A stretch of DNA of 64,000 nt from Kudoa neothunni (Eukaryota; Animalia; Cnidaria). The DNA is taken from contig OZ199838.1 of NCBI GenBank assembly GCA_964304625.1, positions 15,614,929 to 15,678,928 of the forward strand, read 5' to 3'. The translations under genes were made by a program, and so were the position numbers. Below the pieces are notes generated by a model, which ran no database searches, was not told the DNA's origin, and saw only the letters and a list, made by a program, of their open reading frames with translations. Below are positions 54,511 through 56,896 of this stretch, piece by piece; position 1 is the first letter of the stretch, and each line of letters starts with the position of its first letter.

Positions 54511-55423
54511 GACAGTTACAGGAATAAAATAAAATAATGAAACAAAGCATTAACAAAACTATAAAAAGCGGACGGTAATTAATCCGGATTATGTTTGTGT
54601 CGCAATAGTTCACTTGTGCCCAAATAGCATGAATAATGGTTTATGGAGCAATGTAAGCATCTAATGGTAAATTAGCAATGATAGGAATCTCATCAACTAA
54701 TTTTTATTAAATACATACAATAAGCATGACAACTAGACGGACTGAAAGAATAGAACTTTAAAAAAAAATGAAAAGTTCTGGGGTCAAAAATGACCCTAGT
54801 TGGTTCCTCACGTAATTTTTTTGAGTCGATCCTTCGAGGGCTAATATACTTAAATAATGTAGTATGGAATAAGAAGATGGGAAGCATTAGCTTAAAATCC
54901 CAGAAAATTCAATGGAATCTCTATAACACGTCTCGACTCCCTAAAGTTCTCGTCGACCATATTGGAGACCCCTGTCCTAGACATGTACTATTAAATTGTC
55001 ATACTTATGAAATCTATTTATTAAAATGAAAATATACTAAGCTAAATAATTACTTGATCCTCAAGAAGTATTGACTCGTAATACGGTATGTAGAATTCTT
55101 ATTAGTCTTATAGGTAAATTAAAGATTTGTATGTGAGAATATAACCACACGTTAGTTCTAATCTCAATTTTTATAACTTTATTTCACTAAAATTTTTAAT
55201 TAATTTTTTATAGTTTAAATTATTCTTCGGGTTTTATTTAAAGTGAGACTAACTAATATTGGGATTAAGTAAATCACTGAATACACTTTAACGAATATTG
55301 GATCTGTGAATGAAATTATTGATTGTCTCCTTTTCTTAATAAACATCGGCGTATTAGTTATTTAACGAAGTTCTCAATAACATAGTAGTATCTGTTAATA
55401 GAATTCCTTATATCTGAAAAAAT

Positions 55424-56896
55424 ATGTTATTTTTATTAATTTTTGTTGCGTTAAACATTAATTACTTTCATATAAAATCAGGTACATATACTATGTCCAC
55501 ATTAAATAATGTCATTATAGAGCCAGCACTTCCTTCCTATGAAAGGGATGTGGGTGAATTTAAACCAGGTGAAGATATAAACAACGAACTCACAAGATGG
55601 TATATTAATAATAAAACAGCTGAATGCGAAACTTTCCAATACAGAGGAATACAAGGCAACTTTAATAACTTTAGAACGGAAATAGAATGCAAAAGACATC
55701 GTAAATTCTCTATTGATGTAATAAAATAATTTTGTATAGTTGAAAATCCTATTTCTGATAAGATTGATGGGTGTCAAGATCCTCCGAAAAAAGAGGGGTC
55801 CTGCAATACTCTTAAAAAGACTGATCTATACACACAAAAATGGTCATGGGATCCGTCTACTGCCACTTGTGAAACTTTTTCTTACACAGGTTGCGGTGGG
55901 AACAGAAATAGATACGATTCAATTGAAGAATGCAAAATATTTTGTTATAGTATATTTTGTTCAAAATATTCGATTTATAATCACATTTTTACACGAAGAC
56001 GATGAATACGGGAAACCAACTGCAGCCGGGGGTTTAAGTAACGAACAAGATAAAAAAGAATATGCCGTTCCAAGTTATTTTGACTGTCACTTAAAACCAG
56101 ACCTTCAAACGAGTGAAGCTAAAATCAAAGCTATCGCATTGATTGATGAGAAACAATGTGTGTATGTTGCAGCAGGATTGAGCGACCCAGATAAAAAGAT
56201 AAGAGGAGCATTCGATACTATTAACGAATGCGTTAAAAAATGTTTCCGTAAATAATATTATCTTTATTTAAATAATGTTTCCATAGCATACGAGCACGAT
56301 GATGCAGCTGCTGAAACTAATATAAAAATGAAACAAAAAATACCAGCTTGTAGTAGAGTACAGCCTGACCAGTTTAATAAGCCAAGTTCACCATCCGACG
56401 TCAAACCAACAATAAGATTCTACTATGACCAAAGCAACAAGGGTTGTTCACGATTTGAGAGTTGGCCTGGAGTATTTGATAAATCTAAAAATAATTTTCC
56501 TTCCGCGGAAATATGCGAAAGTTATTGTGGATGGGGTAAATAAATCATTTAGACTAAAATAATTTCATTAAAATGTGAATAGATAAACCCGAACCTAAGG
56601 ATGCTATAGAAAGAAAACCTGCTTGTTATCAGCCTAAAGCTGGTGAATACAGCAAATCTGATAACACAAATGGGAACCTTAATGTTAAAAGATGGTATTT
56701 TGATAGTTCAGAAGGTAAATTTAAATGCGTCTCCTTTATGTTTGGAGGTCTCAATGGAAACAATAACAATTTTAAATCAAAAGATGCATGTAAAGCTATT
56801 TGCTGGGAGCAAATGGACCGCGACGAAAAAACATTTAATGAAGAGGACTTATATCAAAATACCAGCGATGATGAACAACCCACTCCGAGCTCATAA
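55424..56896 (+). CDS. Five-Kunitz protein, copy K
   Basis: Same exon structure with an open frame. Loop is PPKKEGSCNTLKKTDLYTQKW. Stop TAA at 56894-56896. Confidence 0.9.

Follow-up and report, generated by a model that had tools for sequence, protein, structure and literature searches.

Probable ectopic gene conversion between neighboring five-module Kunitz genes of the myxozoan Kudoa neothunni

Kudoa neothunni, a parasite of tuna muscle, carries a cluster of secreted Kunitz-type genes, one of which, copy K, is a mosaic whose parts are identical to two of its neighbors, the inverted copy H and the directly oriented copy J. This structure most probably reflects real non-allelic (ectopic) gene conversion within the cluster. 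The stretch analyzed here, referred to as the window, comprises 64,000 nucleotides (contig OZ199838.1, positions 15,614,929 to 15,678,928 of the forward strand, assembly GCA_964304625.1), and a blastn comparison of K with it revealed ten full copies and one 5' fragment (Table 1). Near-identity across the array was not found among the ten copies of the window, which are 71-89% identical to each other in a MAFFT alignment, the H-K pair excepted. The assembly was generated from infected yellowfin tuna with high-fidelity (HiFi) reads, hifiasm-meta, and scaffolding by chromosome conformation capture (Hi-C), and it has a quality value (QV) of 48.5; the genome of 40.2 Mb is organized in three chromosomes (N50 of 12.0 Mb, guanine-plus-cytosine [GC] content of 30.4%, median intron of 49 bp), and the fish stage is taken as diploid (PMC12239612). 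Our genome-wide searches covered 40,260,978 bases on four contigs, and the exon-by-exon reading and the permutation alignment comprised 17 copies.

According to frame reading and exon-by-exon reading, K is an intact six-exon gene starting with an ATG at 55424, and its GT-AG introns of 39-49 bp are all in phase 1. Its predicted product consists of a signal peptide, encoded by exon 1, and five Kunitz-type modules, one in each later exon. Over its entire length, K has an identity of 94.4% with H and of 79% with J. At the 247 sites at which H and J differ, K reads 77 times H-type, then 25 times J-type, and then 145 times H-type; the chance of finding the 25 J-type sites in one uninterrupted block is about 2e-32. 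The 5' H-identical segment, which shows not a single difference, consists of 159 bp upstream of the ATG, exon 1, intron 1, and the first 21 nt of exon 2. The 3' H-identical segment is exact at 55692-56713 (1022 bp) and again at 56715-56779, and both H-identical parts together contain 1 difference in 1365 bp. Between them lies the J-identical tract, which at its maximum starts at nt 6 of exon 2, includes intron 2 (39 bp), and ends 22 nt into exon 3. In both end zones (55526-55541 and 55692-55761), H, J, and K have the same sequence, and the minimal tract is confined to exon 2, i.e., to module 1. In the minimal tract, 22 codons differ between K and H (10 residue changing, 12 synonymous), and one of the residue-changing codons is the site of a nonsense codon in H. 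Since no K-private site is present in 55265-56779, no remnant of old K sequence separates the adjoining tracts.

The J-K match is exceptional with respect to both the family and the genome. The run of 106 concordant polymorphic sites shared by J and K was not equaled in any column permutation of the GENECONV type (0 of 2000). Genome-wide, the K tract matches at 100% only K itself and J, the next best match is 95%, and the copies other than J differ from it by 5-15%. At least 20 genomic matches to exon 2, spread over three chromosomes, were recorded in this search. Purifying selection as the source of the identity was rejected, because the tract contains intronic sequence and, relative to H, 12 codons with synonymous differences. 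A GC-biased conversion was considered for the 25 tract sites and dropped, since K has a weak base 13 times and a strong base 9 times (hand count) and thus shows no bias. The original prediction had described K as equal to H from about 160 bp upstream through intron 1 and again from intron 2 to the middle of exon 6, with an exon 2/intron 2 tract that equals J at 50234-50469, differs from H, and spans its nonsense codon. All of these segments were recovered at the expected places, and the GENECONV-type test that it had proposed put the J-K pair at the permutation floor. The extent that it gave for the tract holds; the boundary of intron 2 probably does not, because this intron more likely comprises 55701-55739 (39 bp, phase 1), so that the tract reaches 22 bp into exon 3.

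Table 1. Kunitz gene copies of the window and segments of copy K (positions refer to the window)
Feature	Position	Strand	Basis or remark
Copy A	1157-2664	+	blastn with K
Copy B	3758-5241	+	blastn with K
Copy C	8355-9825	+	blastn with K
Copy D	14476-15971	minus	blastn with K
Copy E	22075-23555	+	blastn with K
Copy F	31956-33431	+	blastn with K
Copy G	34574-36062	+	blastn with K
Copy H	40444-42435; gene 42029-40557	minus, inverted versus K	blastn and exon reading
5' Kunitz fragment	46490-46791		blastn with K
Copy J	50023-51526; gene about 50129-51585	+	blastn and exon reading
Copy K	54975-57013; gene 55424-56896	+	blastn and exon reading
K exons	55424-55481, 55521-55700, 55740-55949, 55999-56247, 56287-56535, 56583-56896	+	exon reading
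Diverged upstream flank of K	54975-55264	+	76.5% identical to H 42435-42189, with indels
5' H-identical segment of K	55265-55541 (277 bp) = H 42188-41912	+	site-by-site comparison, zero differences
Maximal J-identical tract in K	55526-55761 = J 50234-50469 (236 bp)	+	site-by-site comparison, zero differences
Minimal J-derived tract in K (likeliest direction)	55542-55691 (150 bp), within exon 2 = module 1	+	25 K/H differences, 25/25 J-type
3' H-identical segment of K	55692-56779 (1088 bp) = H 41761-40674	+	single difference at 56714
Older patches J with H/K	55925-56013 and 56103-56303	+	98-99% identity
Older tract F with H/K	55963-56140	+	4 differences in 178 bp, background about 75%
Diverged exon-6 tail and 3' flank of K	56780-57013	+	74.4% (tail) and 85.7% (3' flank) identical to H

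The homology between H and K extends over a unit of 2.04 kb (K 54975-57013 versus H 42435-40444), in which a core of about 1.5 kb at 100% identity contrasts with flanks that are 14-26% diverged. Since this core sits within flanks of 74-86% identity, H and K are, to judge from their sequences, old inverted duplicates whose core was homogenized recently. The signature of a fresh duplication was not found in the H/K unit, as its core is bounded by older, diverged homologous flanks; the divergence of the tails and 3' flanks had been recognized beforehand. The J patch is located between H-type parts and H is inverted, and therefore a single unequal crossing-over cannot yield the structure of K. A recent ectopic conversion that includes inverted copies, as had been proposed, is well supported by the combination of the identical core in a diverged unit and the internal J patch.

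With respect to the direction of the exchange, the phylogenetic trees differ between the two parts of the gene. Outside the tract, K and H group together (100/100) and are joined by L001, a copy on chromosome 3 (98/98), while inside the tract H groups with L001 (98/96) and K is identical to J. Since exon 2 is of a distinct, common type in H and L001, the K tract is foreign to the K lineage, and since the genome contains no other 100% source, a transfer from J to K is the likeliest direction on the basis of these patterns. The tract is still present in J alongside K, which documents the end state only. Two candidate scenarios were rejected. An overwriting of H instead of K was set aside as the principal explanation, because the genome lacks a recent donor for exon 2 of H, and two H-to-K tracts that spared an older J patch fit poorly with the lack of any K-private site between the tracts.

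A different history would be that the tract moved from K to J, or that both H and K were originally J-type in the tract and an L001-like donor subsequently replaced exon 2 of H and introduced the nonsense codon. Intron 2 of H and its first 22 nt of exon 3 (equivalent to 55692-55761) are identical to J and unlike L001, as would follow if H once had the whole J-type tract, and exon 2 of J is not obviously native to J (closest relatives L002/L003 with 94-95%). However, exon 2 of H has no match above 93% genome-wide, i.e., the recent donor is missing; the tract is foreign to K under any history, with J as the sole 100% match; and older J-H/K patches with 95-98% identity can explain the identity over 70 bp. 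The J-type intron 2 of H is accordingly attributed to such older exchanges, and only a small chance is left for the different history.

The transfer from J to K would be compatible with the following course of events. Homologous repair would recently have made the 1.5-kb core of H and K identical, in either direction, and subsequently, or in one repair event by template switching, a stretch of 150-236 bp of K would have been copied from J, the directly oriented neighbor 5 kb upstream. The copied stretch would cover module 1, with exon 2 either alone or together with intron 2, and the J patch would be either the latest event or part of the single template-switching repair. Since H is inverted, these exchanges would have to be conversions without crossover, e.g., by synthesis-dependent strand annealing or a similar pathway, and the tract ends in short stretches identical in H, J, and K, where invasion or resolution would be easiest. 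Rad51-family and MutS homologues were found in the genome. The outcome would be an intact K with parts identical to two neighbors, each of which has a disabling lesion outside the shared part.

The patchwork is not limited to K. Twelve copy pairs lie at the permutation floor, including J-K; others are, e.g., A-B, F-G, F-H/K, C-J, and H-J. Since older tracts, shared by H/K with F and with J, are layered beneath the recent one, conversion is recurrent in this family. Distant loci may also have exchanged sequence, as hinted at, though not proven, by older relatives of the J type and the L001 type that lie on chromosome 3 and elsewhere on chromosome 1. Copies A and B, which are 84% alike overall, have exactly the same sequence over 327 bp (1261-1587 versus 3874-4200), beginning at the start codon and ending at the onset of exon 3, the conserved site at which the J-K tract also ends. 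The initial 22 nt of this exon (55740-55761 and equivalents), which encode the inter-module linker, are almost invariant in the 17 copies and more conserved than most of the module sequence. As two independent tracts end there, it is possible that the exon-3 start serves as a homology anchor for resolution.

Most copies of the family are intact, whereas H and J each carry one lesion. In H, the only lesion is located in exon 2, where an in-frame TAA occupies 41831-41829 (K equivalent 55622-55624), within the tract; this copy is otherwise open to its stop at 40559-40557. In J, an A-run of exon 5 (about 51023-51027) is 1 nt shorter in the assembly than in all other copies, which shifts the frame. 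Copy F has a one-base frameshift in the A-run of exon 5 (32908-33151), with 244 nt compared to 243 nt in the near-identical copy G. Because of the low coverage of the assembly, the homopolymer lesions of J and F are treated as unconfirmed: they are either real single-lesion pseudogenes or low-coverage HiFi errors. K shares with H and with J only parts outside the lesion of the respective partner. The idea that disabled copies served as donors fits this end state, with a frameshift in J and a nonsense codon in H, but the lesions may postdate the transfers to or from K, and that of J is a 1-nt homopolymer difference.

Intact genes with segments identical to disabled neighbor copies are reminiscent of pseudogene-templated conversion, which is known from chicken immunoglobulin V genes, trypanosome VSG mosaics, Borrelia vlsE, and Anaplasma msp2. 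The original prediction had drawn an analogy to antigenic-variation loci, and this part of it found no support. Both H and J are complete genes, each with an upstream region, a start codon, and GT-AG introns of its own; in these two copies, the exon reading did not reveal donor cassettes of the silent, promoterless, or truncated kind that would supply a single expression site. The systems mentioned differ from the K locus, which lacks promoterless cassettes and a known expression site, gives no indication of a programmed or frequent switching, and involves single lesions that may be younger than the transfers. By analogy, a dedicated diversification system would use the disabled copies as a reservoir, from which module-sized conversions generate or rescue variants in expressed copies. 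The intactness of K and the position of both lesions would fit, as would a tract of about one module, the frequency of mosaics in the family, and the retention of Kunitz proteins in myxozoans as a toxin-like secreted family (PMC9144971). Against such a system stand the complete structure of the donors, with only single lesions, one of them doubtful, the predominance of intact copies, and the lack of any sign that the conversions are directional, highly frequent, or tied to one expression site; moreover, the read contigs on K that are discussed below contain no variant letters, which is a weak argument, as contigs drop rare variants. Ordinary repair accounts for everything seen, and a dedicated system is accordingly very unlikely. 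In a broader version, the Kunitz arrays of Kudoa would be a combinatorial cassette store, in which intact variants of the secreted inhibitors are constantly assembled or restored by conversions of the size of a module, with disabled copies among the donors. If this were true, host proteases or immunity would be the pressure, and K would have been caught in the act, with a patch from the frameshifted J replacing the stretch with the nonsense codon of H; we regard this as an unlikely extension of the conversion reported here.

Read support for K as a real mosaic was assessed with Logan contigs of run X1, one of four runs of one sample that hold the stretch. One X1 contig of exactly 277 bp covers 55265-55541 without overhang, and another one joins the unique flank of K to 55294, 30 nt into the shared core. 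Because the 277-bp contig stops at 55541, a non-H continuation beyond this position should exist in the reads, and because the contigs break exactly at the predicted branch points, the left junction is probably present in the reads as well. Two Illumina whole-genome runs and one metatranscriptome filed under the species label, which presumably represent the host, contained zero reads of the stretch and thus do not bear on the mosaic. The depths of the X1 bins are compatible with a short K-specific junction contig. An exact look-up of the open frame across the left junction (55424-55726) found no record, which is expected, since read-graph contigs break at branch points.

Several observations weigh against conversion from J to K. 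An approximately unbiased test on the 236-column tract, which offers too few columns for a decision, does not reject a grouping of K with H and L001 (p 0.13), so that the direction rests on site patterns and parsimony. The X1 reads come from the source sample of the assembly and are thus not independent, a junction-spanning contig is absent among the X1 contigs listed, and the depth of the contigs shared by H and K is 1.4x that of the unique flank, not 2x. The k-mer coverage of the parasite in the HiFi data is only about 7, in a meta-assembly from host tissue from which haplotypic duplication was purged (PMC12239612). The low coverage, the type of assembly, the missing junction contig, and the single source of the reads would also favor an artefact of assembly or polishing, in which K is actually like H (or J) throughout and a chimeric consensus, mis-mapped reads, or a homogenizing correction created the mosaic and the H/K identity. 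This is highly improbable, because the 2-kb unit has two unique flanks and is far below the size of HiFi reads, single ones of which should span it; mis-mapped reads from a 17% diverged copy would have to supplant those of K at all of the 25 sites but at no other position; the X1 contigs break exactly at 55265/55294 and 55541; and the assembly combines its high QV with similar mosaics in many other pairs.

Overall, K is a very clean case of ordinary, textbook gene conversion that requires no new mechanism. As in interlocus gene conversion of other tandem families, short tracts of perfect identity that include introns and synonymous sites lie within diverged paralogues, the tree changes along the gene, inverted copies exchange sequence without rearrangement, and the tracts measure about 0.15 to 1.5 kb. 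Nothing differs in kind; a five-module Kunitz family and Myxozoa as the host lineage are new in the literature searched, in which no paper describing paralogue conversion or Kunitz arrays in Kudoa was found. The genome paper of K. neothunni mentions conversion only as GC-biased conversion (PMC12239612). Concerted evolution has been reported for clustered toxin genes of sea anemones, i.e., neurotoxin and Kunitz genes (PMC3447340, PMC6802032). Both cases concern clustered, secreted toxin-like families of cnidarians with exchange among paralogues, but the anemone arrays are described as near-identical, whereas the copies of Kudoa are patchy mosaics at the identities given above.

Kunitz proteins, which usually have several domains, belong to the small number of toxin-like families that most myxozoans have retained (PMC9144971). 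In K, modules 1, 2, 4, and 5 match Pfam Kunitz_BPTI and all pass its curated cut-off (E values from 5.6e-07 to 1.7e-14). Module 3, encoded by exon 4 (55999-56247), has no Pfam Kunitz_BPTI match, and a search of 1.84 billion representative proteins returned six weak matches (E up to 1e-3) and no named relatives. On this evidence, module 3 appears nearly private to the lineage, set between recognizable Kunitz modules. A Logan contig of run SRR31175926 from another sample (L010:540-1810, 20% GC) encodes all five modules in an unchanged order, with 31-58% identity in tblastx; the five-module architecture therefore predates K. neothunni. A contig of the European Nucleotide Archive record ERZ26696836 (L009:2001-8648, 44% GC, 788x) encodes a predicted protein of 2215 residues with 15 repeats of a 32-residue stretch, which is 59% identical to the center of module 3. 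All copies have five phase-1 introns and one module per internal exon, a symmetric layout that would permit the swap or loss of a whole module without breaking the frame. The 5' fragment of the window is 78.6% identical to K 55166-55477, contains only the upstream region and exon 1, and lies about 360 bp from a gene for a piggyBac-type transposase (open reading frame [ORF] 47415-48803, Pfam DDE_Tnp_1_7, E value of 1e-80). Another, shorter transposase ORF is located at 25941-26669.

The current study exemplified for the Kunitz cluster of K. neothunni that toxin-like paralogues of a myxozoan exchange sequence now or very recently, as indicated by 0 differences in the tract shared with J and by the near-perfect identity with H, and that this exchange crosses orientation. 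Gene trees, ratios of nonsynonymous to synonymous substitutions (dN/dS), and orthology calls for Kudoa Kunitz genes mislead unless recombination is modeled. Pseudogenes with a single lesion need not be evolutionary dead ends in such arrays. With unique flanks only 2 kb apart, the K locus provides a tidy, testable site for measuring conversion between isolates.
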